From Macrostomum lignano (lineage: Eukaryota): 26,875 nt of DNA. This document shows positions 2,627 to 26,657 of this stretch, in pieces. Below the pieces are notes generated by a model, which worked only from the letters and a program-made list of their open reading frames with translations, was not told the origin of the DNA and searched no databases. The DNA lies in contig NIVC01005078.1 in the NCBI GenBank assembly GCA_002269645.1, positions 1 through 26,875 on the forward strand, given 5' to 3'. Within the stretch, counting starts at the first letter, position 1. Each line of letters starts with the position of its first letter. The position numbers and the translations under genes were made by a program.

Positions 2627-3061
2627 TCACTGATCTGACTGCACAATTGGCCGGCCAATAGCCATGGGGTCGTCTTCTGTGCAAGCGATGGACGGCTTCC
2701 GGTGCTGCTGCAGCTGCTGCGGTTGCAGCAATTGCTGAGGTGGCAGCAGCGGGTCAAGGCCGCCAACCAGAGATTTCTTGCGTACAGCTGGCACACTTTC
2801 CGGCGTTGCCATGGTGTCGCCTGTGGCGGTGTCCAGCAGATCGGAGCCCCTGGTGGGAGCCCGGTGAGCGCCGACCACCTTAGCCTTGGCCATGTTGTAG
2901 TCGCCGCTGTCAAAATATTTCTGACCTTTATTGTTCAGCCGCTTGTGCAGCACGGAGCTGCCAATGCTTTTGCGATTCAAATTCGGATATTTTTGTTTTA
3001 ATTTGGCCTCCTCTGTTTGCTCGATTGAAACGGAGTTGGACTGGCCTGGAGTGGTCGACAT
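2627..3061 (-). CDS. ENSA: Alpha-endosulfine/ARPP-19 family PP2A-B55 inhibitor, 144 aa, intronless CDS
   Basis: EEAKLKQKYP, Greatwall-site motif KYFDSGDYNMAK (Ser at 2906-2908), TGDTMATPESVP and PKA-type RKKSLV align with ENSA/ARPP19/Endos. AG acceptor 6 nt before the ATG (3068-3069); AATAAA on the minus strand at 2471-2476. The symbol denotes the family; ENSA vs ARPP19 cannot be separated. Confidence 0.95.
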   Translation of the reverse strand: MSTTPGQSNSVSIEQTEEAKLKQKYPNLNRKSIGSSVLHKRLNNKGQKYFDSGDYNMAKAKVVGAHRAPTRGSDLLDTATGDTMATPESVPAVRKKSLVGGLDPLLPPQQLLQPQQLQQHRKPSIACTEDDPMAIGRPIVQSDQ

Positions 3062-5340
3062 GACTTGCTTTCAGAAACGAGGGGTACAGATGTATTTCAC
3101 TTGAAACTGGGGTAAATCACTATATTCCCATAGTCATATTCATTAGCTGCCATAGTTGCCCAGCTGGTGCAACATAGTTGTACATAGTGAGCCATTTTTG
3201 CAACAAAGCTTTGCTCTGCATTCAATTAAAAGCTTCTCTCTCTTTAGTTTTGGCCTTGACTAGTTAATACTCTTTATTTATTTTTTTGATCAGTGTTGCA
3301 ACATAACCTGACCTTGGCTACCTTGTCACCTAGCTAGATTGGCTAGGTTTTCAATATGAAAATGCATCAAATTATATGAAATTAAAAATCTGCACCTGTC
3401 TATCAATCTAAAATAAGCTAATGCATATGAACATGAATTTTTATATCTAAATATTTTGGTTTAGAGGTGCAGTAACAGCTTGAAATATATCTTCCTATTT
3501 ATTGCATATATTGTATACCATTTTGCAATGCATAAGTTAAAATGCTTATGATTTTGATAAAAATTGAGTTGTTGATATGAAATAGGTTTAACAAAAATTA
3601 ATGTTTTCTATGTATATTGCCATGTTGGTACAATTTGAACAGAAAAACAGTAGATAGATATATTTTCTTAATTTTATACAATTTGATATATCCTAGGCTT
3701 ATTGCATATGCATAACATTTATATAATATTAAATTATGCTATATATCTTTAATTATAATTATAGAAAAAAGCTTTTTTGTAGAATCAAAAAAAAGTTAAC
3801 ACTTGTTATCATAATATATAAGTCTTGAAAAGCTGTATATCAAAAGGAAAAGTGTAGTTTTTTTATATATGTATAATTTAATGTAAGTATTAATACTCAC
3901 TGATACTAAACTTTACTACTTTTAAAAGAAAATATTCAAATTTGGTGTTCCCTCTTTGATATAATATTTATTTATAAACTCTTTAGAGAATTGTTGCTAA
4001 TGACTTCTATAAGCATCCTCTTTTAAATTTAAAAATTAATTAGCCTGTCTTCTAATTACTATGTCTATAATACTTTATAGGTTATTTATATAGATATCTT
4101 GATTTTTAAGCAAAGCAACTTGATGTTTATAATTGGAAGATACAATTAATTACCAAATCAATGCATTAAAATAGTGAGAATAGGAGCTCCAAGATTAAAA
4201 TAAAAGCAAAATTACTAGGTTAATTTTTTTCTAGAATCTCAAGACTAAGCACTATGCTTGTCTCATTAGGTCTCGAGTACTTTAGTACACTAGCTAGGCC
4301 CTAACCATAATTCTTTAAGCATAGTTTATTTAAATCAAGCCATGTCATATTATTAGAGAATGAGTAGCTAGGCATACCAACAATTGTGAAAGGGTTGATA
4401 AAATATGCGTTGTCATTGTCATGACAAAAGCAAGTCACCGAAGTGCAATAATAAATTAAGAAGCTAGCGAGTGAATAATGTTATATTAAATAACACTTAT
4501 ATTTTACCATTTTATCTTAAATAATAGGACTACACTTTAAATGAATGCCTAAAGTACTAATATTAAATCTTCGACTCAAGTTGTTATCGTCAAGTGATCC
4601 CCCACGATAATTTTTCAGAAACGTCTAAATTAAAAGAATACCAAAGATTAAGAATGTCCTGATGCTAGTCGGCTAAAAAGCTAATAACTTTTCAATCAAT
4701 TCTGTCTGAAATTCGGGGGTTTTACCGCTTTAAGAGGAACCTAGAGTAAATTTTCTTATAATGCACGGCAGCCCCAATATTGGGAAGCCGCGTGAGACGC
4801 GAAGACATTTTGGTGTCAGAGCAAGTTGAAGCTTTGCAGAGCAGGGAGAGTTGAAGCGAAGTGACTTTTCCTGTAAAAATTACTTTTTATAGTTTTTTGT
4901 TCAGAAAAGCACAGGTGCTATTATCCCACACTTATTTTGGGGTTATAAATTCGAGGTTAGGATCAAGGGTGCATGGATATGGATATATAGAGATCAACTT
5001 GCAGGCTTAAATTACATGTAGGGCTAACATGCAGTCACTTCGGCGACAAGACATAGGGGGAGCCTAGCTAGAGAACCAGTTAATTCGGCGACAGCTTGGA
5101 CTCGGCGGCAGTATTCGGCGACAGCAGTTCGGCGACATATATACATACAGTATGCGGCAGTAATATATTATCATATTCCTTACTCGCTAAATTCATATAT
5201 ATATTATCAACAACATTAAAAAGTCGCCACCTTTGAGAGTGCGAAGTATAAAATTCTAGCTCAGCAGTATTGACTTTTGAGTGACGCAACTTGTGCCACG
5301 ACAACGTACAAAAACAACAACAGAATACGCAATTATAGCG

Positions 5341-5647
5341 TCACAGGGCGCGCTTCAAGGCCAGGTCGCGAATGAACGCCACGCCGCCGGCCAAATCCGG
5401 GGCGCCGGCGTCAGCCAGCAGGCAGTCAAGTGCGCGCCTGCCCCTGCCGGTAGGGTGCCAGCAGCGTTAGCAGCAGCACCTCCTGCACCGGCTCTGGGCA
5501 GTACGACTCGGCGCAGATGATGTGGCCTGCCAGCTGGAGTCGCCGACGGCGCAACAGATCGCTTGGACGGATCAACGTCAACGGACGGATGTCAACTTGT
5601 TGCTCGAGCGACTCCGTCAGCGTCCAGGCCTCGGCATTGTACAGCAG
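5341..5647 (-). mobile_element. 5'-truncated, decayed non-LTR retrotransposon (RTE-like) ORF C-terminus
   Basis: Minus strand reads LLYNAEAWTLTESLEQQVD...RPSDLLRRRRLQLAGHIICAESYCPEPVQEVLLLTLLAPYRQGQART*, then shifts frame to DCLLADAGAPDLAGGVAFIRDLALKRAL*. LLYxxExWTL and RRRRLxxAGH are typical post-RT motifs of RTE-type LINEs; a short GTT-rich tail follows the stop. Confidence 0.8.
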
Positions 5648-7102
5648 TCACGCGACGCAGAGTTGGGCTCGGCTGCTGGGTGTGGAGGGATTGGGAACAG
5701 CGGAGGGCGAAGATTGGATCATATTGAAGCTTTCGCCCGGTTTTCATTGCTTTTTGAAGCATTTTTTATTATCAACATGGTTGGCCAGGTGCACGTGATA
5801 GACGCTGGTCGGAAGATTTTGCTCACTGAGGCAAATGGTAGCGACTTTTCAATGTTGCTGAGTAATATACATAATATGTTTTTCCCAGTCTAGCCACACA
5901 TGCTTAGTAAAACGAATTTTGAGACACCTAGAACAATTTTTGAACAGACTAAACATTTATCGAAAATGCTAGTTAAATTATATTTTATACTGAGTCTTTT
6001 ACACTCAGCACTTTTTGCTGCGAAAGTGTAGAGTAGCTAGGAGGCTGTATGCATTTGTATGTCATATATGTACATGTACATGCGCAATGCACTGAGTTCC
6101 ACTCAAAGGCTCATTCACAACCCGCTATCAAATGAAGCTATCAAGTCACACGACTGATGTACAAAGCGATGAATAAAGGAAATATATAGAAAGTAAATGA
6201 GCTACATATATGTATGTATATTTGAGTGAGCAATTTAGCATGTACAATTATATCATTTGGATTCAATCAAATGAGTTTTTTGTCTATTGTGTGGAGATGC
6301 ACATTGGCTCAATTATTCGCTGCAGAATGGTATAGTTGAAATTGAAGTTGCATTCAGCAATTAATTCTCAATGCTTAATTTTAATTGTGACAACGAATCA
6401 GCGAATACATGTTGCAGATGCTGCCGGATGTATCTGAATGTCTAATATCTGTCGGGAAAGCCACGTACATTTTAATGAAGTTGTTAATTATACATTTTAC
6501 ACTATACGCTCGTACTTGTAAAAAAATTATACTGTGACCCATATATGTAGTTCGTGATTCGTCTATAACTTTACAATAAAACACAAATAAATATAAATTG
6601 TTCATCAAATCACTTAACAATGTTACAATGCACTTTTTAGTATTTATAGGGTTTGTTGAACAAGAACGCGCGTAGCATGGGCAGGCTATAGTTTTTTGGC
6701 GATTACACAACGAATCTTACTAAACAATCTAACATTGTTAAAATACAGTAGTGATGATCCTACTACAACTACACGATCGTGCAGATTGGAATCTTGGAAT
6801 GGGAAAGGTATGCAAGCTTTGTATATAGAACAATTACGAGTATAAATGTTAGTATCGCTTTTGACGATCTAAATGGGAATTTGGGCAATCAAAACGGGAC
6901 GCCACAGACACTCAAGCCAGGCCACAGATCACACCCTAATCCATGGACTTAGGCAGTTTAGCAAAGTCTACTGAGGGAGGCTTGGCCATAGACTATAACT
7001 TTGGACATTCAATATGGTAAAAAGCCATTCAAAACGGGAATCGGACTGAGATTTTAGAGCTCTCTGTCCCTCTCTCCCCTGTTTGCTCGTCTTTGGCCTG
7101 AA

Positions 7103-7369
7103 AGCGACCCCATTCGATGGCGCCATCAATTCGATGCGATTGAACAAGGGTCATCTATCGCAGGAGCTGCAAGAATCTTGCAAAATCAAGAAAACAACGA
7201 AGAAAACAAAGAAAACATTCCGAATCGCTGCCAACTTTCGACTCGATGGCAGAGTGAAATCCCTTCCTCGCGGTGATCGGAAAGACAGGATTGTGCAAGG
7301 CAGCATCAGGAAATGAGAGAATTCTTGGTTGAGAAACTCGATAAAAATCCTTTCCTGACGCTCAAGGAG
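7103..7369 (+). pseudogene. Frameshifted N-terminal paired-like HTH of a Tc1/IS630-type transposase
   Basis: Joining three frames gives SDPIRWRHQFDAIEQGSSIAGAARILQ/IKKTT..FRIAANFRLDGRVKSLPRGDRK../HQEMREFLVEKLDKNPFLTLKE, matching the paired-like HTH pattern (AARIL, G-x-V-x-S-L-P-R-G, NPFLTLKE). Two frameshifts and an AAGAAAACA tandem duplication; no DDE domain seen. Confidence 0.6.
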
Positions 7370-8164
7370 TTTCTGAGTTACTTTTGTTTTGCGATCATTA
7401 TTCACATTTTTAATGCAGAACAATCCATTACTACAAACAATGCATTGTCTGTAGGATCGTCAAACAGAAAAACAATGCAAAGAATCAGCGGTCGCAGCAC
7501 GTGACAACGATTTGTCTATGGTTCGCGCCTACCGGCGCTCGCCAGACAATCGTTGTCACGTACTGGGACCGCTGATTATTTATCCATTGTCCCAGTGTAG
7601 AGTGAATACTAATATACTCCAACAGAATTCAACGAACCAAACAACTCGCTAAAAAAACAACTTTTATTCTACAAGACACCTAATTGCTAGCAAGTATCTA
7701 TAGAAGCTGCAATCTATTCAACGGTATAACAAGCTGCAAAGTTTTCATGTGAAAAATTCCAGCCCAATTGCGGTTTTGTGCAGTCAAACCTGCAAGCCAT
7801 TGTCACGCGGTTTCGGGCCGCAGTTGTAACATTGCGCTATGCTACATCGCACTACATGAACCGTATTATAGAGAAATCATGTGCCTTGAGGGGTTGGCCC
7901 TCAAAGGACGTTAAATTGCACGCGAGCAGACCCGTGGCGCGAGTGACTGCTCTTGGAATCGAGCCATGGGCAGCTGGCACACCAGGGCGCCGCGCTATAG
8001 GCTACGGCTTCATCCCATGAGAATCTGTCTGTTTGACGCTTCTGTTTTTTTAAAAGTGCTCGCCCTGATGGTTTTTGTATATGTGAATCCAGGCAGCTGA
8101 GGTGATGCTAAATATGCTGCATTTGCATTCTTAGAACTGTAATTAGATCCTGATAATCTAATTA

Positions 8165-8308
8165 GATCCTGAAGTCACGGATCCTGAAGTCACGGATCCT
8201 GAAGTCATGGACTCTGAAGTCATGGACACTGCAGAACCCATGGACACTGCAAAAGTCATGGACACTGCAGAAGCCATGGACACTGCAGAATTCATGGACT
8301 CTGAAGTC
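8165..8308. repeat. Short array of 15-bp (GGATCCTGAAGTCAC) and 18-bp (CATGGACACTGCAGAAGT) units
   Basis: Tandem copies read directly; the array grades from one unit type into the other. Confidence 0.85.
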
Positions 8309-8429
8309 GATAGCACTTGAAACTGCCGAGACATTGAGCTTTGGTGGCATAAGTTCTACAATCAATTGGCTTTAAAATCTCAAACGAATAACTCTGAAGA
8401 GAAAATTATAAGATAAAAAATTAGGAACA

Positions 8430-9190
8430 AAGGTTTAGAATAGGGTTTAAGTTAGGTTTAGGTTAATGTTCATAGGTTAGAGTTAGGGTATAAGGCTAGG
8501 TTTTAGGATAGTGTTAAGAATAGGGTTAAGGTTTGGCTTAGCTTCGGTTTAGGATATGTTTACGTTAAGGTTAGGGCTAGGTTTAGGTTAGGCTAGGTTT
8601 AGGTTAGGGCTAGATTTAGGTTAGGGCTAGGTTTAGGTTAGGGCTAAGGTTTAGGTTAGGGCTAGGTTTAGGTTAGGGCTAAGGTTTAGGTTAGGGCTAG
8701 GTTTAGGTTAGGGCTAGGTTTAGGTTAGGGCTAGGTTTAGGTTAGGGCTAAGGTTTAGGTTAGGGCTAGGTTTAGGTTAGGGCTAGATTTAGGTTAGGGC
8801 TAAATTTAGGTTAGGGCTAGGTTTAGGTTAGGGCTAGGTTTAGGTTAGGGCTAAGGTTTAGGTTAGGGCTAGGTTTAGGTTAGGGCTAAGGTTTAGGTTA
8901 GGGCTAGGTTTAGGTTAGGGCTAGATTTAGGTTAGGGCTAAATTTAGGTTAGGGCTAGATTTAGGATAGGGCTAGATTTAGGATAGGGCTAGATTTAGAT
9001 TAGGGCTAGATTTAGTTTAGGGCTAGATTTAGGTTAGGGCTAAATTTAGGTTAGGGCTAGATTTAAGTTAGGGCTAGATTTAGGTTAGGGCTAAATTTAG
9101 GTTAGGGCTAGATTTAGGTTAGGGCTAGATTTAGGTTAGGGCTAAATTTAGGTTAGGGCTAGGTTTAGGTTAGGGCTAAGTTTTAGGTTA
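8430..9190 (+). repeat. Interstitial telomere-like array, G-strand orientation, 17-18-bp unit GGTTTAGGTTAGGGCTA
   Basis: Degenerate 8430-8570, homogeneous 8570-9190; nearly every unit contains TTAGGG. Confidence 0.93.
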
Positions 9191-9432
9191 GGACATTGGC
9201 TTAACAGTTAATTCTCGTAGACTCCATCTGATGGCATCGCATAGTTTATTAAAAAATGGCTACAATTTACATGTGGCGATAATTATTTTCAGCATGGAAC
9301 AGTATCCATTTCTGTCAAGTATAAGTATGATTTCCTGCGGCTCGACTGACATGCATTGACCCTTTTCAGCAATAACGTATCGCTGAACAATTCAGAAATT
9401 TATCCGCTCCTAAGTTTTCTAATTGAATCATA

Positions 9433-10216
9433 ATGAACTCCACACTGCATCTGCTCTTCATCGCATCTATGGTTCTTCTGTTATTCGCCGTTGGTAAGCT
9501 TCTGAAAAATAATTATCACCCAGTAACCAAATCTAAGCATTGCTACTAAGCCACTAAGCATTGCCAATTATAGTCTATGGGACATTGATCGGTTTATACT
9601 CGTACGTCGTGTACTTTATTTATTCTTAGTAGACAACGTGTACTGCTGTGCATGGTTTAGGAGGATTGAGCCCTGAGGAGCTGAAGAGAGCTGGGGAAAG
9701 AGAGAAACTGATTGATTCTCAGTGTTGGCTGGCTTTTTATCACTTTGCTTGGCTGTCGCAGTCTATGGCCCATAGACTGAGGCAAGATATCCAAGGCCCT
9801 TAATTATAACCCTAGCCCCAACCTAACCCTAACCCTAACCCTAAGCCCTAACCCTAACCCTAACCCTAACCCTAGCCCTAGCCCTAATCCTAGCCCTAGG
9901 CCTAACCCCAAAACTAACCCTAACCCTAGACCTAACCCTCTAGCCCTAGCCCTAGCCCTAACCCTAACCCTAACCCTAACCCTAACCCTAACCCTAACCC
10001 TAACCCTAACCCTAACCCTAACCTTTAGTTTCAGGCACGACCGAAGGCAGCTGCAAGCAGCGGTTGCACCTGTGTCTGGCCAGCTCGAACGGCTCATTTG
10101 ACGAGTGCTGCCAGGGGTTGAAGTGCTTCGCCCCGGATGTCATCAAGTCGCGGGACGATGATCACATTTTTGCTGGCTGGTGCATCCGAAACAGTTCGAG
10201 ATTCGAGTGGGATTGA
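9433..10216 (+). CDS. Secreted inhibitor-cystine-knot (knottin, conotoxin framework VI/VII-like) peptide, 80 aa, join(9433..9493,10035..10216)
   Basis: Exon 1 MNSTLHLLFIASMVLLLFAV ends G|GTAAGC (phase 1); acceptor TTTCAG|GC at 10034; spliced CDS is 243 nt, in frame. Product MNSTLHLLFIASMVLLLFAVGTTEGSCKQRLHLCLASSNGSFDECCQGLKCFAPDVIKSRDDDHIFAGWCIRNSSRFEWD with C-x6-C-x10-CC-x4-C-x18-C. ATTAAA at 10315-10320. Confidence 0.88.
9808..10026 (-). repeat. Interstitial telomeric array (TAACCC)n on + (TTAGGG on -) inside the knottin intron
   Basis: Degenerate CCCTAG/CCCTAA units, then about 11 perfect TAACCC copies at ~9957-10023. Confidence 0.95.
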
Positions 10217-10734
10217 GTGGCTGCCTTTCCTTTCTGACTCAACAGCTGCTAACTCATCAATCTACGAGCATAAAAGCAATCTGGCACATCACGTTTTTGT
10301 AAAAAAATGACACAATTAAAGCAAACTATTTTTGTGATTCAACATTTTTCTCATCGAAAAGTTCACCGCAGGTAAACAGACAAATTTTCACAGTGTATTT
10401 CTCAAAATACCGTGTAGTTGTAAATCTAAATAGCTACATGTACTAAAAATCTGCATGAGTGCGTGCGGAACTGTACTGTACTGTACAGTAATAACATTTA
10501 CTAATTTTCCTTCTAATTGAAAAGTTAAAAATAGAAAAATTCAACTGAAAAATAGTATTCCTTGTTTTATTGAGCCTAAAAATGAAAAAAAAACTTGATC
10601 GGCCAAAAAATTCTACATACTACTGCTCTAGAAAGTGTAAAATAGTAGTGTACGAGCGTATTACGACTTAAAGCTCCACTGTTTCATTATTTTATAGCAG
10701 TTTTCAACGAATCCAGATGAATTACGTCATCCCA

Positions 10735-13700
10735 TCAAATTTTCCCATGCAGCCAGTAAGTCTTCATCTTTTTCTCCTAAAAGTGAAGAAATATTGGTTT
10801 AATAGGTTATTTATTCTCAATAAAAACCATAGACAAATGAAGCATAATTAGAAATCCCAGTCAACTGAATCCCAGTTAGGGAATCCAAGTCAGGGGAATC
10901 CCAATCAGGAGAATCCCAGTCAAGGCAATCCCAGTCAGGGCAATCCCAGTCAGGGGAATCCCAATCGGTGGAATCCCAGTCGGTGGAATCCCAGTCAGTT
11001 AAATCCCCGTCAGGGCAATTCTAGTCAGGGAAATCCCAGTCGGTGGAAACCCAGTCAGGGGAATCCCAGTCAGGGGAATCCCAGTCAGGGGAATCCCAAT
11101 CAGGAGAATCCCAGTCAAGGCAATCCTAGTCAGTTAAATCCCCGTCAGGGCAGTTCTAGTCAGGGAAATCCCAGTCGGTGGAAACCCAGTCAGGGGAATC
11201 CCAGTCAGGGGAATCCCAGTCAGGGGAATCCCAATCAGGAGAATCCCAGTCAAGGCAATCCTAGTCAGGGGAATCCCAGTCAGTGGAATCCCAGTCAATG
11301 GGATTCCAGTCAGAGGAATCCCAGTCGGTGGAATCCCAGTCGGTGGAATCCCAGTCGGTGGAATCCCAGTCGGTGGAATCCCAGTCAGTTAAATCCCCGT
11401 CAGGGCAATTCTAGTCAGGGAAATCCCAGTCGGTGGAATCCCAATCGGGGAATCCTTATCAGGGGAATCCCAGTCAGTGGAAATCAACCAGATGATCTGG
11501 AATCCCAGTCAGGTTAATCCCAGTCAGGGAAATCCCAGTCAATGGAATCCCAGTAAGGGATTCCCAGTCAGGGAATCCTAGATTGCTCAATCTGCAATCT
11601 CAAAGTCCAGAGAGTAATAAGTTGTAAATTTAGTGCTAAAAACGGAAATTTAGTCCTTATCTCGCCGCTGCAATACGTTCGTAGGCACAGGAAATTTCTG
11701 AGAAACGTTGTCGAAAATCTGAATCATTTTTTCCTACCTGAACTTCGACTTCGCCGCGAAATTCCAGCTCAAACTGGTTGGTGATCTCCAACAGGGCGAA
11801 AGTTCGCTCGCTAATCTGGACTTTCGATGCTGAAAAAAAATTGTGAAAAAAACTCGTCTCATACTTATAGTAATACTAGAGCATTTTATTGCAATTTTTT
11901 TCCTACGCTGCCCGGTGGACTCCATGCAGTTGGCGATGTGCACCGTCTCGCCAAAAAGACAGTAGCGCGGCATCTTGGTGCCCACAATCCCGGCAACCAC
12001 GGCTCCTGAAAAATTAAATCAGCCAATATTAGCCAATAGCAGATGGTACTTTGAATCAAAATGATTTTTTCACCTGAGTGAATCCCAATGCGAATTTTCA
12101 CGCGGCCTTTTTCCAGGGCTCCGGTGGAAAATTCCATCATTGCGTCGCGAATGTCCAGCGCCACTGAGGCGATCTCCGCTGCGAAGGGAAAATTATCCCG
12201 AATAGATGAATACTATAGTGGCATATTGATTAATCAGCCTGCCTCTCCCTGCCTGCATCTCCCTGCCTGCCTCTCTCTGCCTGCATCTCCCTGCCTGCCT
12301 CTCCCTGCCTGCCTCTCCCTGCCTGCCTCTCCCTGCCTGCCTCTCCCTGTCTGCCTCTCCCTGCCTGCCTCTCCCTGTCTGCCTCTCCCTGCCTGCCTCT
12401 CCCTGCCTCTCCCTGCCTGCCTCTCCCTGCCTCTCCCTGCCTGCCTCTCCCTGCCTGCATCTCCCTGCCTGCCTCTCCCTGCCTGCCTCTCCCTGCCTCT
12501 CCCTGCCTGCCTCTCCCTGCCTGCCTCTCCCTGCCTGCCTCTCCCTGCCTGCCTCTCCCTGCCTGCCTCTCCCTGCCTGCCTCTCCCTGCCTGCCTCTCC
12601 CTGCCTGCCTCTCCCTGCCTGCCTCTCCCTGCCTGCCTCTCCCTGCCTGCCTCTCCCTGCCTGCCTCTCCCTGCCTGCCTCTCCCTGCCTGCCTCTCCCT
12701 GTCTGCCTCTCCCTGCCTGCCTCTCCCTGTCTGCCTCTCCCTGCCTGCCTCTCCCTGCCTCTCCCTGCCTGCCTCTCCCTGCCTCTCCCTGCCTGCCTCT
12801 CCCTGCCTGCCTCTCCCTGCCTGCCTCTCCCTGCCTGCCTCTCCCTGACTGCCTCTCCCTGCCTGCCTCTCCCTGCCTGCCTCTCCCTGCCTGCCTCTCC
12901 CTGCCTGCCTCTCCCTGCCTGCCTCTCCCTGCCTGCCTCTCCCTGCCTGCCTCTCCCTGCCTGCCTCTCCCTGCCTGCCTCTCCCTGCCTGCCTCTCCCT
13001 GCCTGCCTCTCCCTGCCTGCCTCTCCCTGCCTGCCTCTCCCTGCCTGCCTCTCCCTGCCTGCCTCTCCCTGCCTGCCTCTCCCTGCCTGCCTCTCCCTGC
13101 CTGCCTCTCCCTGCCTCTCCCTGCCTGCCTCTCCCTGCCTCTCCCTGCCTGCCTCTCCCTGCCTGCCTCTCCCTGCCTGCCTCTCCCTGCCTGCCTCTCC
13201 CTGCCTGCCTCTCCCTGCCTGCCTCTCCCTGCCTGCCTCTCCCTGCCTGCCTCTCCCTGCCTGCCTCTCCCTGCCTGCCTCTCCCTGCCTCTCCCTGCCT
13301 GCCTCTCCCTGCCTCTCCCTGCCTGCCTCTCCCTGCCTGCCTCTCCCTGCCTGCCTCTCCCTGCCTCTCCCTGCCTGCCTCTCCCTGCCTCTCCCTGCCT
13401 GCCTCTCCCTGCCTCTCCCTCCTGCCTCTCCCTGCCTGCCTCTCCCTGCCTCTCCCTGCCTGCCTCTCCCTGCCTGCCTCTCCCTGCCTCTCCCTGCCTG
13501 CCTCTCCCTGCCTGCCTCTCCCTGCCTGCCTCTCCCTGCCTGCCTCTCTGCCTGCATCTCCCTGCCTGCCTCTCCCTGCCTGCCTCTCCCTGCCTCTCCC
13601 TGCCTGCCTCTCCCTGCCTGCCTCTCCCTGCCTGCCTCTCCCTGCCTGCCTCTCCCTGCCTCTCCCTGCCTGCCTCTCCCTGCCTCTCCCTGCCTGCCTC

Positions 13701-16700
13701 TCCCTGCCTCTCCCTCCTGCCTCTCCCTGCCTGCCTCTCCCTGCCTCTCCCTGCCTGCCTCTCCCTGCCTGCCTCTCCCTGCCTCTCCCTGCCTGCATCT
13801 CCCTGCCTGCCTCTCTGCCTGCATCTCCCTATCTGCCTCTTCCAATGATACTAATCTTCTAGCAAATCTCGCAGTCCTTTATCCCATCGGGAGTCCCCCG
13901 GCAACTACACAGAGGCTCACAAGCGTGCATATCGCCATTCTTGATGGGCACTCCCGAGGCCACCATGTACGCATCGCCGATCGTCTCAACTTTGAAGGCG
14001 TCGTACATTTCAATTATGTTGTCGAATAGGCTGCGGATGGAGAAGTGGAAGCTCCATTATTTTTCTGTCTTCCTCTTTCTGTCTTTTTGAGGTCTTCCTC
14101 AAATTTCTGATGCTTAATTACCGAACCATAGAATCCCAAGGTCAAAATATACAATCCCGAGATCCTATCTTTAATCCCGAGATCCCATCTCCAATCCCCA
14201 AATAACATCCACAATCCCGAGATCCCATCTCCAATCCCTACATCCCATCTACAATCCTGAGATTCCATCTACAATCCTGAGATCTCATTTCCAATCCCAA
14301 GATCCCATCTCCAATCCCAAGATCTCATCTCCAATCCTGAGATCCCCTCTCCAATACTGAGATCCTATCTCCAATATCGAGATCCCATCTCCAATACTGA
14401 GATCCCATCTCCAATCCCTACATCCCATCTTCAACCCTTTGATCCCATCTCCAATCCCTAAATCACGTCTTCAATCCTGAGATTCCATCTCCAACCCTGA
14501 GATCTTATCTCTTATCCTGAGATCCCATCTCAAATCCCTACATCCCATCTACAGTCTTGAGATCCCATCTACAATCCCGAGATCCCATCTCCAATTCTTT
14601 GATCCCATCCCCGATCCCAAGATCCCATCTCCAATCCTGAGATCCTATCTCCAATTCCGAGATCCCATCTCTCCAATCCGAGATCCCATCTTCAATCTCG
14701 AGATCCCATCTCCAATCCCGAGATCCCGAATCCCAAGCGAGATCTCATACAAGGCTTACGAGTAGAGACTATTGAGCAGGTCGATAACCTCCATCGGTGA
14801 GATGCTTGACGAGATCACAGTGAAGCTGACGATGTCGCTGAAGTAGATGCTGACGCACTGGAACGTCTCAGGTTCCACCGTGAGGCCCTTGGTTAGCTGG
14901 TCGGCCACCGTCCGAGGCAGCATCTGGAACAGCAGCGTCTCTGTGCGCTTCTTCTCGACCTGTAGGGACGTGGGAGTCAGTTTGGCTCATTTAGCTTAAT
15001 AAACTCTTTGAATTCATTTTCCTGGCTGCTATTGTGTGTACCATTGAAGTTCTGACCTGCAAGTTTGGAGTTCGGATCTCGGGATTGGAGGTGGGATCTC
15101 GGGACTGAAGATGAGATCTCAAGGTTGGAGATGTGAACTCGGGATTGGAGATGGGATCTCGGATTGGAGAGATGGGATCTCGGAATTGGAGATGGGATCT
15201 CGGATTGGAGAGATGGGATCTCGGAATTGGAGATGGAATCTCGAGATTGGAGATGGGATCTCGGGATTGGAGGTGGGGTTTAGGGCTTGGAGCTGGGATC
15301 TCGGGATTGAAGATGAGATCTCAAGGTTGGAGATGTGAACTCGGGATTAGAGATGGGATCTCGGGACTGGAGATGGGATCTCGGATTGGAGAGATGGGAT
15401 CTCGGGACTGGAGATGGGATCCCGAGATTGGAGATGGGATCTCGGATTGGAGAGATGGGATCTCGGAATTGGAGATGGGATCTCGGGATTGGAGATAGGA
15501 TCTCAGGGTTGGAGATGGAATCTCGAGATTGGAGATGGGATCTCGGGATTGGAGATAGGATCTCAGGGTTGGAGATGGAATCTCGAGATTGGAGATGGGA
15601 TCTCGGGATTGGAGATAGGATCTAAGGACTGGAGTTCGGATCTCGGGACTGGAGATGGGATCTCGGGATTGGAGATGGGATCTCGGATTGAAGAGATAGG
15701 ATCTAAGGACTGGAGTTCGGATCTCGGGACTGGAGATGGGATCTCGGGATTGGAGATAGGATCTCAGGGTTGGAGATGGAATCTCGAGATTGGAGATGGG
15801 ATCTCGGATTGAAGAGATAGGATCTAAGGACTGGAGTTCGGATCTCGGGACTGGAGATGGGATCTCGGGATTGGAGATGGGATCTCAGGGTTGGAGATGG
15901 AATCTCGAGATTGGAGATGGGATCTCGGGATTGGAGATAGGATCTCAGGGTTGGAGATGGAATCTCGAGATTGGAGATGGGATCTCGGATTGAAGAGATA
16001 GGATCTAAGGACTGGAGTTCGGATCTCGGGACTGGAGATGGGATCTCGGGATTAAAGATGTGAACTGGGGATTGAATATGGGATCTCGGAATTGGATATG
16101 TAAACTGAGGATTGGAGATGAGATCTCAGGATTGGAGATGGGATATCGGATTAGAGATGGGATATTGGATTAGAGATGGGATCTCAGGAATGGAGATGGG
16201 ATGTCAGGATTGGAGATGGGATATCGGATTAGAGATGGGATCATAGGATTGGAGATAGAATCTCGAGATCGGAGATGGGATCTCGGGATTGGATCTGGGA
16301 TCATCAGAAAGTTTTGAATTCCAATGAAAAAGTAGTTACGTGGATAAACTAGCTATTAATGCTTGAGATTCCATGTTTTCGGTATATAGGATGAGGGCTT
16401 TCATCTAGGAATCAGGGTTGGATTATGGAAAATTCGATCACCGCAATCACATCCTGATTACATTAAAAGTGGCAGGAGCCATCTCTCACCTGCAACGCTT
16501 TAATTTTCTTTCGCAGTTTTACGGCATAGGTGAGAATCATCTGGCCCATGGCTCTGATGGTGGAGGCGTACCACACGGTGAGGCTGACACACAGAATCGT
16601 CACGATGATGAACAGAGTGGAGAACACGATTAAGTTCATTCTGGCCTCGTTAACAGAAGCTTTGAGCTGACTAACTATCGAGTCCGAGACGGAGTTCCGC

Positions 16701-19700
16701 ACCTGCGGATTGTGTGCATAGTGGGTCTTCTAATTAAGCAACTTCTAATTCTCTAGGGATTAAACGTGTGCTTGGAATTTGAATTTATTTAATCAATAAG
16801 CTTAGTTGCATTTCAATTAACTCAAAGCCTTAATTAAACGGATCAGCTCAACGAGCATCGTTCGTCTTCTTTGAAAGTAGAAATGCATCTCCTGCTGAGG
16901 CTTTTTTCCTGTAATTATTTTCTAGATTAAGATTCCTTATTAGAACAGGCGCGACCGACATCTAATTAGGCCAGAAGTGCAGCTAGAGATTTTTATTGAG
17001 GGGTAGTTAGGACCGCCTCTTTGAGGGCGCCATTTACTTTGAGGGGTGGCGCTATTTCATATTAGAATTGGCGCCATTTCATTTGAGATGTGGCGCCATT
17101 TCATTTGAGATGTGGCGCTATTTCATATTAGAATTGGCGCCATTTCATTTGAGATGTGGCGCCATTTCATTTGAGAGGTGGCGCTATTTCATATTAGAAT
17201 TGGTGCCATTTCATTTGAGATGTGGCGCCATTTCATTTGAGATGTGGCGCCATTTCATTTGAGATGTGGCGCCATTTCATTTGAGATGTGGCGCCATTTC
17301 ATTTGAGATGTGGCGCCATTTCATTTGAGATGTGGCGCTATTTCATTTGAGATGTGGCGCCATTTCATTTGAGATGTGGCGCCATTTCATTTGAGATGTG
17401 GCGCCATTTCATTTGAGATGTGGCACAATTTCATTCAAATCTCAAGCGACTCACCTGAACGAAGAGATTTATGAGCACAGTGGTATTGTCAAACCAGCCC
17501 TGAGCCAGCACGCTTCGGAATTGCTGCTCCTGTGTGTTGCAATAATCGATGAAGCTGCTGTTCAGCATCATTGCCCGTTTCAATGTTAAATTGCTGTCTA
17601 AATTGGCGGTGTTCATGTAAACCGTCTCGAACTCGCTGATGCAAGAGGCGCAATAGCCCCTGCCAATGTCGTACTCAGTTAGTTGAGTTCCGTAGAGGCG
17701 CAGAAAGTACTGCGGGTGAATTGAGGGTTGCTTCAGTACTATTCAAGATTCTTGTTTATCGTGTGAATTTAATTATTGTAATTATATTTATTTCCGAATG
17801 TAACATCCCGTTGTGGGGTAGGAAGATTCCGATTGTACATCCCGTTGTGGGGTAGAAAGATTTATTTCCGAATGCACATCCCGTTGTGGGGTAGAAGATT
17901 CCGATTGTACATCCCGTTGTGGGGTAGGAAGATTCCGATTTTACATCCCGTTGTGGTTAGGAAGATTCCAAATGTACATCCCGTTGTGGGGTAGGAAGAT
18001 TCCGATTGTACGTCCCGTTGTGGGGTAGGAAGATTCCGATTGTACATCCCGTTGTGGGGTAGGAAGATTCCAAATGTACATCCTGTTTTGGGGTAGAAAG
18101 ATTTCGTTCCGAATGTACATCCCGTTGTGGGGTAGAAAGATTTCTTTCTGAATGTACATCCCGTTGTGGGGTAGGAAGATTTCTTTCCGAATGTACATCC
18201 CGTTGTGGGTAGGAAGATTTATTTCCGAATGTACATCCCGTTGTGGGGTAGGAAGATTCTGAAGGTACATCCCGTTGTGGGGTAGGAAGATTCTGAAGGT
18301 ACATCCCGTTGTGGGGTAGGAAGATTCTGATTGTACATCCCGTTGTGGGGTAGGAAGATTCCGATTGTACATCCCGTTGTGGGGTAGGAAGATTCCGAAT
18401 GTACATCTCGTTGTGGGGTAGAAAGATTTTTTCCGAATGTACATCCCGTTGTGGGGTAGGAAGATTTCTTTCCGAATGTACATATCCCGTTGTGGGGTAG
18501 GAAGATTCCGAATGTACATCCCGTTGTGGGGATAAATAAATAATTAAATAATTAAATTGTGACTGTACAGTCTCGTAAACGTTTTAAATAAATGAGTTCG
18601 GCTACCGCATGCCGGCCTATCAAAACCCACCCTGAAAAGTTCGGGCGGCAGGTGGCAGTTGATGAACCAAGACGAGCCCAGGGCTCGCTGCAGTCCGATA
18701 GCCTCGGTGACTCGCAGAATGGCTGAAAAGGCCAGCATTTGAGTCCAGAGCTTGCTGCCCGGAGGGAAAATGGCGGTGCTGTCGCCCCAGTCCATCAGCA
18801 TGTTGATGAAGGGAGTGTAAAAGTCCGGCGAGTCAATTGTTTGCATTTCGTGAGCACTGAAACGAGGAAGGTTTAATAGTTTTCTTTGCGAAAAAGGACG
18901 TCATAAAAAACTTACATCTCTAAGAATTAATTCCCTAATAATTATCTCACTTGTGTTTTTGCGGTCATAGAAACTCACGCCGATGGATGATGGTCTCAGA
19001 ATCACAGAATCTCACCCCCAGTGATGATGATCTCAGCATCTTACAATCTCACCCCAAGTGGTGATGGTCTCAGAATCTCACCCCAAATGATGATGGTCTC
19101 ACAATCTCGTCCCAAGTGATAATGGTCTCACAATCTCACAATCTCACCCCAAGTGATGATGGTCTCACAATCTCACCCCAAGTGATGATGGTCTCAAAAT
19201 CTCACCCCAAGTGATGATGGTCTCAGTATCTCACAATCTCACCCCAAGTGATGTGATCTCAGAATCTCACCCAAAATGATGGTCTCACAATCTCGCCCCA
19301 AGTGATGATGATCTCACAATCTCACCCCAAGTGATGATGGTCTCACAATCTCGTCCCAAGTGATAATGGTCTCACAATCTCGTCCCAAGTGATAATGGTC
19401 TCACAATGTCACAATCTCACCCCAAGGGATGATGGTCTCACAATCTCACCCCAAGTGATGATGGTCTCACAATCTCACCCCAAGGGATGATGGTCTCACA
19501 ATCTCACCCCAAGTGGTGATGGTCCCATAATCTCACCCCAAGTGATGATGGTCTCACAATCTCACCCCAAGTGATGATGGTCTCACAATCTCGTCCCAAG
19601 TGATAATGGTCTCAAAATCTCACAATCTCACCCCAAGTGATGATGGTCTCACAATCTCATCCCAAGTGGTGATGGTCCCACAATCTCACCCCAAGTGATG

Positions 19701-21287
19701 ATGGTCTCACAATCTCACCCCAAGTGATGATGGTCTCACAATCTCGTCCCAAGTGATAATGGTCTCAAAATCTCGTCCCAAGTGATAATGGTCTCAAAAT
19801 CTCACAATCTCACCCCAAGTGATAATGGTCTCACAATCTCACCCCAAGTGATGTGGTCTCACAATCTCGTCCCAAGTGATAATGGTCTCAAAATCTCACA
19901 ATCTCACCCCAAGTGATAGTGGTCTCACAATGTCACCCCAAGTGATGTGGTCTCACAATCTCACCCCAAGTAATGATGATCTCAGCATGTCACAATCTCA
20001 CCCTGCATCAAGGAACTCACATGGTGTCGACTCGACGCCGGAACCAAGCCAGGTTGGCGGCCATGTCAGCTTTGGTGTAGAGCGGCCTGATGGGCACAGT
20101 ATAACCGCTGCTGGTGTTGCTATAGTAAAAGTACTCAATGGGAGGCCAGATGCTCATGCCCTCAAGAGCGGCATCCGAAATAACTCGTTGATTTTTGATC
20201 CGCTGATAAAAGACCATGTCGGTGCCGTTCGAGGCCAGGAAGGTTGCCGTCAGGCCGCGCTCGATCTGCAGGCTGCCGACCAGTTTGCTCATGTCCATGT
20301 TGCCTGAGAAGTGGAGTGAGCATTTTGAGAATTGAGAATATTAAGAATTAGAAGGCTGCGCGGTATCGGGCAAAGAATGAAATGGCGCTCCCTATTGAAT
20401 GACGCTTTGAATTAATCACCCTTCATGACGACTGCACGTATGAACATTTGAAGTACAAGGATGCGGACGCCTAATCGGAATTTTCTCGAGTGAATTTTTG
20501 TTTATGGCAAAACCCCATGCGTTCCCTGTCACTCTCCCGCCTGGGTCCTGCTTGGATTCAACCGCAAGGGCATCAGGGCGGTAGCCGCGATGATGGTCTC
20601 AGGTCAATGGCATCGCCCATTCTGCCTCTCCGGTGTTGAGCGCTTCATCTGTGAATGCCCTGCTTTCAATCCGGATCTCTTTTCCGGCTAGCTACCTAAG
20701 GCCTACCGGACGAGTAACCAACCGCCTCTTCGCCTCTCTTGGACTCTCCGGCAGTCCTGGATCTCCCTGCCCGACACCGCAGCTGCCCGTGGTTGTCAGG
20801 GGTCAGTCGAATGGGCGGTGACGCCTCCCCGCTGCACCCGGATGCCCGGAGCATCCCCTGCAAAAAAGTCAAGTAAGTCCTTCGCGAAGAAAGACGACTT
20901 GATCGGATCTCTGAGTATTACAGATAAATTTAGTCGATAAGATTGCCAGCAGATCTCAAACTCACCTGTCAGTGACACCTGAGCCCGCTGACTCTGCGAG
21001 AACGTGCTCGATGCCCTCGTCAAACCGACAGTGCCAATGGACAGAGCCGCTATCACCGGAATGCTGATCACTGCCAGCATTTTGGCCACCTCAAGCGCCT
21101 GTCTGCAGGCCGTCTGGGTGTCCAGAATCACCTGGATGCGGCCCTTTGTGTCCGAGTTAGCGCTGGATACCATTGACGTGCTCGAGCGTGCGACCAAGGC
21201 TGGGGCTATGCCGTTTGCAACGGAAGCTGCGCTGCTGCTCCGCATGTCGAGGACGCTGGCGCGCCCGTTGGAATATGAGTAGGACAT
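10735..21287 (-). CDS. NIT-domain transmembrane guanylate cyclase (NIT-GC family), 648 aa, complement(join(10735..10776,11738..11829,11907..12005,12074..12178,13921..14030,14760..14959,16490..16702,17455..17709,18631..18856,20021..20303,20966..21287))
   Basis: All 10 introns are GT-AG with consistent phases (1,2,0,0,0,2,1,1,1,0); total 1947 nt = 648 aa + stop. TM1 ([20 protein letters not shown]), NIT motifs [41 protein letters not shown]; TM2 ([22 protein letters not shown]); helical linker [21 protein letters not shown]; cyclase motifs [54 protein letters not shown] on the minus strand at 10566-10571. Confidence 0.92.
10852..11580. repeat. ~15-bp minisatellite (GAATCCCAGTCAGGG) in cyclase intron 10
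   Basis: Tandem AATCCCAGTC-cored units with recurring ~70-bp higher-order blocks. Confidence 0.93.
12234..13842. repeat. 14-bp/10-bp satellite (CCTGCCTGCCTCTC / CCTGCCTCTC) in cyclase intron 7
   Basis: 1.6 kb nearly pure array; explains the 522-586 aa artefactual ORFs. Confidence 0.98.
14152..14748. repeat. 20-bp minisatellite (GAGATCCCATCTCCAATCCC) in cyclase intron 6
   Basis: Tandem degenerate copies; reverse complement of the intron 5 array. Confidence 0.95.
15066..16302. repeat. 20-bp minisatellite (GGGATTGGAGATGGGATCTC) in cyclase intron 5
   Basis: Period 20 is clear at e.g. 15901-15960; reverse complement of the intron 6 array. Confidence 0.96.
17026..17440. repeat. 22-bp minisatellite (TGTGGCGCCATTTCATTTGAGA) in cyclase intron 4
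   Basis: Exact period 22 (17221, 17243 ...). Confidence 0.95.
17789..18531. repeat. 34-bp minisatellite (GATTCCGATTGTACATCCCGTTGTGGGGTAGGAA) in cyclase intron 3
   Basis: Period 34 (18001, 18035) with longer variants. Confidence 0.95.
18974..20003. repeat. 29-bp minisatellite (CTCACCCCAAGTGATGATGGTCTCACAAT) in cyclase intron 2
   Basis: Period 29 (19561, 19590) with ATCTCACA insertion variants. Confidence 0.95.
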
Positions 21288-22361
21288 GGCTCGGGCGCTA
21301 ATCACTAGGCAGGATGGGGATTCGCGATAATCACTGACTCGACTTTGCTTTTAAGCTCAAAGGAAAACCGCCCCAGGCTAGTTGCTTAATGATGATTAAC
21401 CTGCTGTTGCTTCTTTGATTTCAAGCCAGTCCAATGAATCGCAGTTGTTGTTGTTGTTAGTCAAGAAGGCGTAAACTAATAATTACTGCGAGTTGCCATT
21501 GCCAGGACAGCGCAGGATTATGAAGCCTAATCAGTACGTGTGCACTAGTCAGGCTCGAATGAGCCAATCCACTGCCCCCCCATCCCCGGGGGCAAAATTT
21601 GAAATCGCTATACACGGTCTCTAAGTGACACAGCCAACTGCACAGACAAATGAGACTGAGAGTTAGGGGAGGCTGGCTGCATTTTCTACTGCTCCAGGGA
21701 TTTTCATCACCTTTGTGGCCACGCCCTTCCCGCGTTGGCTCTCTGTCTCTAGCTCGACCCCCTCTATTGCTTTGAGTCTCTTCCCCACGAGGTCGCTCTG
21801 CACGCTCATCTGTCTAGCGGACAGGTGAGTCCGGCAAGCAAACGATGAGAGTACGGAAGTAATCTAATCTAATGAGGCATGGACTGCTGCGTCGAGAAAT
21901 CCGGATTGCAAACGGTAGCTGGTCTCATAGAACCTGATTGTCCAGAATTCAGATCTTATAGTATTCCATATAGTTGAATTAGAGACTATGAGTTATTAGC
22001 AGGTGCAGAGCTGTTGAAGTTTCGTGCACTTGTACTTCAATTCATGTCTGGACATGAGACAGTCAAGTGTGCAGAAAAAAGCTTCAATAACTTGTGGCAG
22101 CTTTTGATTAGCATGAGCTAAATGAATATGCCGACTACAATAGTATGAATTATTATTGGTAGTAGATTGTCAATAGTTAATTGAGATGTCTTGAGGAGTA
22201 CCTTTGATTTTCACTGATAGAATGGCTTTTTGAGATTGGAATTCCATGGCTGGTCAAAGAGAGCGACTTGGGTTCAAAGCTCAGTAAGTTCCGACTTGTC
22301 AAAATTAAAAAAACCAGCAAAATCAAGATTTACTCATTCAGAAATTCTCAGATGTACTCAC

Positions 22362-22532: not shown

Positions 22533-23162
22533 TCACTTAATGATGTTATAAAACCGGATGGCATGGGTGCTGTCTGAAGGCAGTGCGCTACCATCTGCTG
22601 CTGCACCCTTCTTCGCATCTTTGGCGTCCTTCTTGGCGTCTTTTGCGTCCTTTGCGTCCTTCTTAACGTCCTTTGCGTCTTTCTTCGCGTCTTTTGCGTC
22701 CTTCTTAACGTCCTTTGCGTCTTTCTTCGCGTCCTTTGCGTCCTTTTTAACGTCCTTTGCATCCTTTTTAACGTCCTTAGCGTCCTTCTTGGCGTCTTTT
22801 GCGTCCTTAACATCCTTTGCGTCCTTCTTGGCGTCCTTCTTTGCGTCCTTTGCGTCCTTTGCGTCCTTCTTAGCGTCCTTTGCGTCCTTCTTAGCGTCCT
22901 TTGCGTCCTTCTTAGCGTCCTTAGCGTCCTTTTTGGCGTCCTTGACGTCTTTCTTAGCGTCCTTTTTGGAATCCTTGGCATCCTTTTTAGCATCCTTTTT
23001 GGCATCTTTCTTTGCGTCTTTTGCGTCCTTTTTAGCGTCTTTTTTCGCGTCTTTAACGTCCTTCGCGCCCTTAGCAGCTTTGGTACTCATGCCGGTGCCT
23101 TCTCCGCTGCATCGGCTTACTGAGCAGTTGAAGAGTTGCTTTAACTTGGCTTCCGCTTCCTG
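22533..23162 (-). CDS. Terminal coding exon of a Lys/Asp/Ala-rich repeat protein (cylicin-like KKD/DAK repeats); 5' exons unresolved
   Basis: Frame is open from a TAG|CAG tandem acceptor at 23163 (QEAEAKLKQLFNCSVSRCSGEGTGMSTK...) to TGA at 22533. Repeat copies differ mainly at synonymous positions (GAC/GAT, GCA/GCC/GCG/GCT, AAA/AAG), unlike the non-coding satellites. Confidence 0.75.
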   Translation of the reverse strand, partial: QEAEAKLKQLFNCSVSRCSGEGTGMSTKAAKGAKDVKDAKKDAKKDAKDAKKDAKKDAKKDAKDSKKDAKKDVKDAKKDAKDAKKDAKDAKKDAKDAKKDAKDAKDAKKDAKKDAKDVKDAKDAKKDAKDVKKDAKDVKKDAKDAKKDAKDVKKDAKDAKKDAKDVKKDAKDAKDAKKDAKDAKKGAAADGSALPSDSTHAIRFYNIIK

Positions 23163-24490: not shown

Positions 24491-26103
24491 CTTGAAGTAT
24501 TTCGATCTGTCTGAAGCATCCGTCCTGAAGTATTTCAATCTATCTGAAGCATCGATCCTGAAGTATTTCAATCTATCTGAAGCATGCATCCTGAAGTATT
24601 CTATCTATCTGAAGCATCCATCCTGAAGTATTCTATCTATCTGGAGCATCGATCCTGAAGTATTTCAATCTATCTGAAGCATCGATCCTGAAGTATTTCA
24701 ATCTATCTGAAGCATCGATCCTGAAGTATTTCAATCTATCTGAAGCATCGATCCTCAAGTAATTCAATCTATCTGAAGCATCGATCCTGAAGTATTTCAA
24801 TCTATCTGAAGCATCGATCCTGAAGTATTTCAATCTATCTGAAGCATCCATCCTGAAGTATTCTATCTATCTAAGCATCGATCCTGAAGTAGTTCAATCT
24901 ATCTGAAGCATCGATCCTGAAGTATTCAATCTATCTGAAGCATCGATCCTGAAGTATTTCAATCTATCTGAAGCATCGATCCTGAAGTATTTCAATCTAT
25001 CTGAAGCATCGATCCTGAAGTATTCCAATCTATCTGAAGCATCGATCCTGAAGTATTTCAATCTATCTGAAGCATCGATCCTGAAGTATTTCAATCTATC
25101 TGAAGCATCGATCCTGAAGTATTCAATCTATCTGAAGCATCGATCCTGAAGTATTCCAATCTATCTGAAGCATCGATCCTGAAGTATTTCAATCTATCTG
25201 AAGCATCGATCCTGAAGTATTCAATCTATCTGAAGCATCGATCCTGAAGTATTTCAATCTATCTGAAGCATGCATCCTGAAGTATTTCGATCTATCTAAA
25301 GCATCGATCCTGAAGTATTTCGATCTATCTGAAGCATCGATCCTGAAGTATTTCAATCTATCTGAAGCATCGATCCTGAAGTAGTTCAATCTATCTGAAG
25401 CATCGATCCTGAAGTATTTCAATCTATCTGAAGCATCGATCCTGAAGTATTTCAATCTATCTGGAGCATCGATCCTGAAGTATTTCAATCTATTTGAAGC
25501 ATCGATCCTGAAGTATTTCAATCTATCTGAGCATCGATCCTGAAGTATTTCAATCTATCTGAAGCATCGATCCTGAAGTATTTCAATCTATCTGAAGCAT
25601 CGATCCTGAAGTATTTCAATCTATCTGAAGCATCGATCCTGAAGTATTTCAATCTATCTGAAGCATCGATCCTGAAGTATTTCAATCTATCTGAAGCATC
25701 CATCCTGAAGTATTTCAATCTATCTGAAGCATCGATCCTGAAGTATTTCAATCTATCTGAAGCATCGATCCTGAAGTATTTCAATCTATCTGAAGCATCG
25801 ATCCTGAAGTATTTCAATCTATCTGAAGCATCGATCCTGAAGTATTTCAATCTATCTGAAGCATCGATCCTGAAGTATTTCAATCTATCTGAAGCATCCA
25901 TCCTGAAGTATTTCAATCTATCTGAAGCATCGATCCTGAAGTATTTCAATCTATCTGAAGCATCGATCCTGAAGTATTTCAATCTATCTGAAGCATCGAT
26001 CCTGAAGTATTTCAATCTATCTGAAGCATCGATCCTGAAGTATTTCAATCTATCTGAAGCATCGATCCTGAAGTATTTCAATTATCTGAAGCAATCCTGA
26101 AGA
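24491..26103. repeat. 33-bp satellite (TCAATCTATCTGAAGCATCGATCCTGAAGTATT), ~49 copies
   Basis: Highly homogeneous; the unit is a dimer of CTGAAG-led subunits; explains the KYFRIDASDRL ORFs. Confidence 0.98.
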
Positions 26104-26243
26104 CTTGCAAAATGCCCACACCAAACCAAGATCCCAAGGTGTTGCATTCTAACCAATGTGCCCCAAACCAGATCACCGGCTCCGAACATCCCGCAGGACA
26201 CTCAGCAAGCAGCGCACTCGAAGTTTAATAAGACACAGAAGCC

Positions 26244-26561: not shown

Positions 26562-26657
26562 GTGAGTCAGAGAGAGTTTTGCTGACACTCTATCTGATAC
26601 ATATAGTCTGACCGTTTGACTTTCTAATGTCCTAACCAGATACCAGCCTTCAGATTA

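Follow-up and report, generated by a model that had tools for sequence, protein, structure and literature searches.

The cysteine order C-C-CC-C-C, where the loops that close the ring are six and four residues long, is overwhelmingly associated with the inhibitor cystine knot (ICK) fold. Such a knot pairs its cysteines I-IV, II-V and III-VI, with the third bond threaded through the ring, around a small antiparallel beta-sheet core. The order is shared by the spider ICK toxins, among them huwentoxin-1 (of the Pfam family Toxin_12), psalmotoxin-1 and pi-hexatoxin-Hi1a, which space their first and second cysteines by 6 residues and their fourth and fifth by 4. Around this scaffold, these toxins display the local motif D/E-CC-x-G-L-x-C-aromatic, an aromatic residue before the last cysteine and an aromatic C-terminal tail. 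The same C-C-CC-C-C array is found in O-superfamily conotoxins (framework VI/VII) and in the mussel CRP-I peptides, which follow the pattern C(X3-6)C(X1-7)CC(X3-4)C(X3-5)C and encode their cysteine-rich mature peptide in the last exon (PMC10138031). Flatworms have a system of their own in UPF0506 (PF11703), described as a knottin-fold family confined to the Platyhelminthes, with members in Schistosoma and Schistocephalus solidus (PMC8400842). The UPF0506 protein A0A183TDP7 of the S. solidus secretome carries the motif C-x6-C-x7-CC-x4-C-x9-C-x2-C-x6-C-x5-CC-x3-C-x4-C (PMC8400842), and in S. mansoni the family is a parenchyma marker (bioRxiv 10.1101/2020.02.03.932004).

[quoted passage not shown] An original prediction had placed a hidden two-exon gene for a secreted knottin at 9433-10216. 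The features of the locus, all on the plus strand, are as follows.

9193..9432, +: a unique 240-bp stretch between a 17-mer telomere-like array and the ATG, which may hold the promoter and 5′ UTR
9433..9493, +: coding part of exon 1 (ATG, 20 codons and 1 nt), encoding the signal peptide MNSTLHLLFIASMVLLLFAV
9494..10028, +: intron, with donor GTAAGC and two in-frame acceptor AGs, one at 10027-10028 and the other, past the end given here, at 10033-10034
9807..10023, +: about 36 units of (CCCTAA)n, an interstitial telomere-type repeat read from the sequence and called by Tandem Repeats Finder
10029..10216, + (or 10035-10216, if the downstream acceptor is used): coding part of exon 2, encoding (VS)GTTEG, the cysteine-rich domain and the TGA stop
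10217..10340, +: probable 3′ UTR, with ATTAAA at 10315-10320, about 100 nt past the stop

Joined as originally proposed, 9433-9493 and 10035-10216 form a 243-nt open frame whose 80-aa product reads MNSTLHLLFIASMVLLLFAVGTTEGSCKQRLHLCLASSNGSFDECCQGLKCFAPDVIKSRDDDHIFAGWCIRNSSRFEWD, followed by the stop. The donor is TTG/GTAAGC at 9494 and the acceptor of this version is tttcAG/GC at 10034/10035. Because exon 1 contributes 61 nt, the intron is in phase 1. It is of the GT-AG type and lies at the boundary between signal and mature peptide, where it had been predicted. The signal peptide also holds up, with a hydrophobic core, LLFIASMVLLLFAV(V), whose mean Kyte-Doolittle hydropathy is 2.8-3.1 over 15 residues. 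Exon 2 supplies a cysteine-rich domain of 55 aa, SCKQRLHLCLASSNGSFDECCQGLKCFAPDVIKSRDDDHIFAGWCIRNSSRFEWD, in which the six cysteines are spaced C-x6-C-x10-CC-x4-C-x18-C. The mature part further contains two N-glycosylation sequons (NGS and NSS), an acidic stretch, SRDDDH, and a tail that reads RFEWD, each as first described, and has a computed mass of 6.3-6.7 kDa and a computed pI of 5.5-6.0. The signal peptide and the first cysteine lie only 4-7 residues apart, in agreement with the proposed lack of a propeptide. Upstream of the ATG, the unique sequence at 9193..9432 includes a TATA-like 'gtataag' about 110 nt 5′ of the start codon and a 'ttttcag' that is a candidate spliced-leader acceptor; promoter, transcription start and trans-splicing are only putative roles of this segment. 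The minus-strand ORF at 9804-10097 was rejected as a gene, as it is merely a translation of the telomere-type repeat, and Rfam and tRNA scans of the whole window returned no matches.

The reality of the gene is confirmed by a second copy that is already annotated, and the description of the gene as hidden therefore has to be dropped. A word-indexed search of 5.8 billion proteins gave a single match, the 82-aa PAA59774.1 (UniProt A0A267EFP3), which is 94% identical over the full query and is labelled a hypothetical protein in GenBank. Its gene, BOX15_Mlig029543g1, lies on contig NIVC01002232.1 of the same assembly, GCA_002269645.1, at a sister locus collinear with the window, where the same endosulfine gene again lies upstream. 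The first exons of the window copy and of the annotated gene match at 61 of 61 nt, and the ATTAAA poly(A) signal is also kept at the sister locus. The protein collection lacks the product of the window copy in both its 80-aa and its 82-aa form. The GenBank annotation of Mlig_3_7 was derived solely from a genome-guided, RNA-seq-based transcriptome filtered for coding potential (PMC5730564). Since only RNA-seq transcripts entered this annotation, the two-exon model of the sister copy rests on RNA evidence, and the gene, with a 94%-identical copy annotated from transcripts, is itself transcript-supported. Together with the open frame and the canonical splice sites in the window, this establishes a genuine, transcribed two-exon gene of M. 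lignano. A full-text literature search for Mlig029543 found no paper.

The sister copy also bears on where exon 2 begins. The window has paired in-frame AGs 6 nt apart (ctttAG/tttcAG/G), of which the original prediction had chosen the downstream one. The sister product reads ...LLFAVVSGTPEGSC..., containing FAVVSGTPEG, and this demands the acceptor cctaAG/tctcag, 6 nt upstream. Given that the transcript-based model at the sister locus uses the equivalent upstream AG, exon 2 of the window copy probably starts at 10029 rather than 10035, yielding an 82-aa precursor with the junction ...FAVVSG/TTEGSC.... Splice acceptor choice is usually guided by the first-AG rule. The upstream AG (10027-10028) is the first AG to follow the final CTAAC motif in that repeat of the intron, so by this rule it should be the main site, and the downstream AG (10033-10034) may serve as an alternative. 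The cysteine domain is unchanged with either acceptor. The (CCCTAA)n array fills the 3′ part of the intron as far as the acceptor and may itself provide CTAAC branch-point-like motifs and a pyrimidine-rich tract for splicing. Measured to the downstream acceptor in both cases, the intron is 541 nt in the window and 678 nt at the sister locus, where it is longer because the (CCCTAA)n array is longer.

The two copies differ little, and unevenly along their length. Over the kilobase that precedes the ATG (8433-9432), the window matches the sister locus at 999 of 1000 nt (99.9%). In exon 2, identity is 177 of 182 nt, and the five differences comprise two synonymous and three non-synonymous changes (T to P, Q to H and R to Q). 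Neither copy has lost the frame or any of the six cysteines. The pN/pS ratio is 0.38, and exon 2 has diverged by 2.7% vs 4.7% in the downstream flank. The direction of these values points towards purifying selection, but with two copies only to compare, the tests of constraint fall short of significance (Fisher p = 0.30; Poisson p = 0.09-0.14). At a larger scale, 3251-9750 of the window (6.5 kb) is nearly base-for-base identical to the sister contig, and 9751-21900 is about 93-95% identical. The drop in identity is abrupt and falls exactly at the intronic (CCCTAA)n array, which leaves exon 1 on the identical side and exon 2 on the diverged one. The pattern suggests that the repeat marks a breakpoint of recombination or gene conversion, or else a haplotype switch in the assembly.

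Beyond its annotated copy, the gene appears to be an orphan, restricted to its lineage within the available databases. An exhaustive phmmer search of 1.84 billion representative proteins returned that copy and one spurious match, a cysteine-free bacterial repeat protein of 1200 aa in which seven summed 'DDWAFDGW' repeats were aligned with 'DDDHIFAGW'. The paralogue search that had been recommended found none in the 26.9-kb window by tblastn and a regex scan, and only the annotated copy among the 1.84 billion representatives. A C-C-CC-C-C match at 26185-26373 was rejected as a paralogue, being an off-frame stretch inside a tetraspanin exon. It was the one other occurrence when stop-free frames of 60 codons were scanned across the window for a loose C-C-CC-C-C pattern, and taken alone the cysteine pattern is weak evidence. 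It is the signal-peptide exon, the canonical in-phase splice sites and the independent RNA-derived gene model that lift the locus above chance.

The orphan status raises the question of whether the transcript encodes a functional product at all. A young, lineage-specific ORF without selected function, borne on a weakly expressed transcript and with a leader and cysteines that arose fortuitously, would account for the lack of any true homologue outside M. lignano among the 1.84 billion representatives, for the three non-synonymous against two synonymous differences and their non-significant constraint, and for the chance recurrence of the loose cysteine pattern once more in the window; it would also suit surroundings that are extremely repeat-rich, with 40% in tandem arrays. 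However, a strongly hydrophobic leader, a canonical in-phase intron at its boundary, an even cysteine count in a known frame and a poly(A) signal are jointly improbable by chance, the frame and cysteines have stayed intact in both copies despite a surrounding block that has diverged by about 5%, and the sister model passed the coding-potential filter of an RNA-based annotation (PMC5730564). We consider such a functionless ORF unlikely, and favour a gene for a secreted peptide.

The DNA around the gene has an architecture of its own. Upstream of the putative promoter, at 8484-9192 (+), lies a degenerate G-strand 17-mer array (GGTTTAGGTTAGGGCTA, about 38 copies), so that two telomere-derived arrays of opposite orientation, this 17-mer and the C-strand CCCTAA repeat, flank the putative promoter and exon 1, with about 614 bp of unique DNA between them. 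Minisatellites of at least 13 different units, with periods of 6 to 42 nt, make up about 40% of the 26.9-kb window, including a perfect 42-mer repeated 8 times at 1-343, a 33-mer repeated 49 times at 24493-26093 and a 1.6-kb array of a 14-mer at 12237-13840 with a GC content of about 70%. A 20-mer minisatellite (CAATCCCGAGATCCCATCTC) and its reverse complement form inverted arrays at 14152-14727 and 15065-16302, which amount to a large imperfect palindrome inside an intron of a cyclase gene. The latter is a multi-exon membrane cyclase gene with an extracellular NIT (nitrate/nitrite-sensing) domain on the minus strand (about 11660-21350), convergent with the peptide gene and with introns filled by minisatellites; Pfam matches NIT in the exons at 20017-20298 and 18544-18846, class III catalytic motifs occur in the exons at 14759-14986, 13862-14056 and 11737-12212, and the gene is absent from the called genes of the sister locus. 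About 6.4 kb upstream of the peptide gene and divergent from it is an endosulfine/ARPP-19 gene (2627-3061, minus; PF04667, E = 5e-8) with the FDSGDY motif, which is also annotated at the sister locus. A 185-aa ATG-initiated ORF at 22533-23090 (minus) consists almost wholly of KDAKKDA-type repeats from a 21-nt tandem array and has no Pfam match; it may encode a highly charged repetitive protein or be a mere translation of the repeat. The right edge of the window holds exon 1 of a tetraspanin gene (26244-26585, plus; PF00335, E = 4e-14).

Whether the peptide is a knottin, as originally predicted, was addressed through its cysteine frame, by profile searches and by structure prediction. Six cysteines in the order C-C-CC-C-C, the ICK frame, lie within the 55-aa mature region. 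The ring segments between the first and second cysteines (6 residues) and between the fourth and fifth (4 residues) are short enough for an ICK ring, and these lengths are those of all 15 aligned spider toxins, apart from 5-6 in some. At 10 and 18 residues, the other two loops are longer than is usual in knottins. Loops of this kind fall outside the ring of the cystine knot.

Searches with the peptide give matches below significance only. In Pfam, the full precursor has no reported family up to E = 10. The mature peptide matches Toxin_12 (PF07740) at 7.9 bits (E = 6.9), below the 21-bit gathering cut-off, and no further family up to E = 10. A sequence search of the PDB gave as its only match the spider double-knottin pi-hexatoxin-Hi1a over DECCQGLKCF, at a non-significant E = 9.3. 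The sub-threshold matches in these two independent libraries are thus to spider ICK toxins only. A spider ICK profile was also built from 15 toxins and validated by its retrieval of 72 solved spider toxins from the PDB. Aligned to it with hhalign, the peptide reached 34% probability over 12 columns, again in the CC-x-GL-x-C segment, and by hmmsearch it scored 3.0 bits; scores at least as high were obtained by 25% of 2000 cysteine-fixed shuffles and by 4% of full shuffles. With a quarter of the cysteine-fixed shuffles reaching this score, nothing but the cysteine scaffold links the peptide to spider toxins, and assignment to a named toxin family is unsupported.

Besides the cysteine order and the 6/4 loops, the flatworm peptide shares with the spider ICK toxins the local motif D/E-CC-x-G-L-x-C-aromatic, an aromatic residue ahead of the last cysteine and an aromatic tail. 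Set directly against them, it has much longer loops 2 and 5 (10 and 18 residues), has no propeptide, is acidic instead of basic, and carries two N-glycosylation sequons. As spiders belong to a different phylum, the likeness would be at most convergent.

Structure prediction gave models too weak to bear on the knot in either direction. The AlphaFold2 models from the single sequence reach a pLDDT of 65.6 (precursor) and 61.9 (mature peptide), and both of these low-confidence models show two helices and a C-terminal hairpin instead of a knottin sheet. In them, the helices span EGSCKQRLHLCLAS and FDECCQG, the hairpin spans WCIRNSSRFEW, and a stretch of 13-14 residues in the long loop between the fifth and sixth cysteines falls below pLDDT 50 in each. 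Foldseek searches of the two low-confidence models against the PDB gave 0 matches at E <= 10. These models would fit a real secreted peptide with a non-knottin fold, for example a disulfide-stapled helical hairpin with a C-terminal beta-hairpin, which would be a new fold or an unrecognised family; the length of loops 2 and 5 and the lack of any Foldseek or sequence match to solved knottins point the same way. However, the models that suggest this fold are single-sequence predictions with pLDDT of only 62-66, a C-C-CC-C-C frame with 6/4 ring loops generally denotes an ICK, and no known helical family suits the spacing, insulin requiring C-x11-C and CC-x3-C-x8-C. This alternative seems to us possible but doubtful. 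Of the original knottin assignment, the cysteine order and the 6/4 ring loops stand, while a significant match in Pfam, the PDB or Foldseek is missing, and judged from the sequence we would give the ICK fold a roughly even chance.

A family name does exist for the sister protein, as UniRef100_A0A267EFP3 is titled 'DB domain-containing protein'. Neither the precomputed Pfam field, which is empty, nor fresh hmmscans at E <= 10 place a DB or any other domain in it, and the name looks unfounded or outdated. The title is nonetheless what would favour reading the peptide as a divergent nematode-type DB module, just as the shared cysteine order of insulin-superfamily precursors and the loosely reminiscent predicted helices would favour an insulin-like peptide. 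Against such membership of a named family, neither copy matches PF01682 or PF00049 at E <= 10. A DB module has 12 cysteines and the peptide six, and the insulin spacings (C-x11-C in the B chain and CC-x3(4)-C-x8-C in the A chain) are replaced here by 6 and 4/18. Unlike an insulin, the peptide also has no C-peptide and no dibasic cleavage sites. The Pfam scans largely refute both assignments, which we regard as very improbable.

Within flatworms, the comparison is with UPF0506. Like the M. lignano peptide, UPF0506 proteins are secreted, cysteine-rich flatworm proteins with 6- and 4-residue loops in their first module. By the published motif, however, UPF0506 is a double module of 12 cysteines, whereas the M. 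lignano peptide is a single six-cysteine module with different loops 2 and 5. No Pfam match to UPF0506 was obtained at E <= 10, a threshold at which the HMMER filters may still hide very weak matches, and no UPF0506 member was recovered by the exhaustive HMMER search of 1.84 billion representatives.

Mussel CRP-I peptides and O-superfamily conotoxins share with the M. lignano peptide, beyond the cysteine array, a secreted, lineage-specific and fast-evolving character and a mature peptide in the last exon. They differ from it in having propeptides with dibasic sites, conserved family-specific signal sequences and short loops. The flatworm peptide, in contrast, has no propeptide, has loops 2 and 5 outside the mollusc range, and is encoded by two coding exons rather than three. 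Neither its precursor nor its mature form matches the Pfam Conotoxin family.

The most coherent account of the locus would run as follows. Exon 1 would encode a cleavable N-terminal signal peptide, and removal of the phase-1 intron would join to it the six-cysteine domain of exon 2, of 55-59 residues and with no propeptide. The 80- or 82-aa precursor would enter the ER and be cut by signal peptidase, most likely after VSG or TEG; both offer small residues at -3 and -1, and V-x-G is a classical site. Three disulfides would then form, one or both of the sequons NGS and NSS may be glycosylated, and a compact, mildly acidic peptide with a pI of about 5.5-6 would be secreted. Its most likely fold would be an inhibitor-cystine-knot-like core with the long loops (10 and 18 residues) held outside the ring, and it would act extracellularly as a protease-resistant, probably glycosylated binding ligand. 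Of these steps, secretion and the site of cleavage are predicted, as are the disulfide pairing, the knot and the action as a ligand, and for the account as a whole, a genuine transcribed lineage-restricted gene for a secreted ICK-like extracellular ligand, we see the balance as even.

The roles first suggested for the peptide, as a toxin, an antimicrobial or a seminal-fluid effector, are pure speculation. Its mild acidity would count slightly against a cationic antimicrobial peptide. Diatoms are the food on which M. lignano is kept, and with such a diet a secretion for defence, the mucosa or reproduction would be more likely than a prey-capture toxin. A more specific proposal is that the peptide is an independently arisen macrostomid ICK ligand with bioactivity, for example an ion-channel or receptor modulator in defence, mating conflict or mucosal protection, and this we hold to be decidedly improbable. 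If true, free-living flatworms would gain with it their first functional ICK effector, in a species amenable to direct tests by transgenesis and RNAi. A literature search linking M. lignano with knottins found no paper, and ICK peptides go unmentioned in a planarian toxin survey. The prior description of UPF0506 as a knottin-like family found only in flatworms lowers the novelty.

As it stands, the gene adds one more lineage-restricted small secreted cysteine-rich protein, held in GenBank as hypothetical, and its main use lies in refined annotation, with a signal peptide, a likely alternative acceptor 6 nt away and an ICK-compatible frame. If both the knot and bioactivity were confirmed, a genetically tractable free-living flatworm would join the animals that have independently evolved knottin effectors, and the uncharacterised UPF0506 peptides of the parasitic species would have a counterpart in a free-living one.
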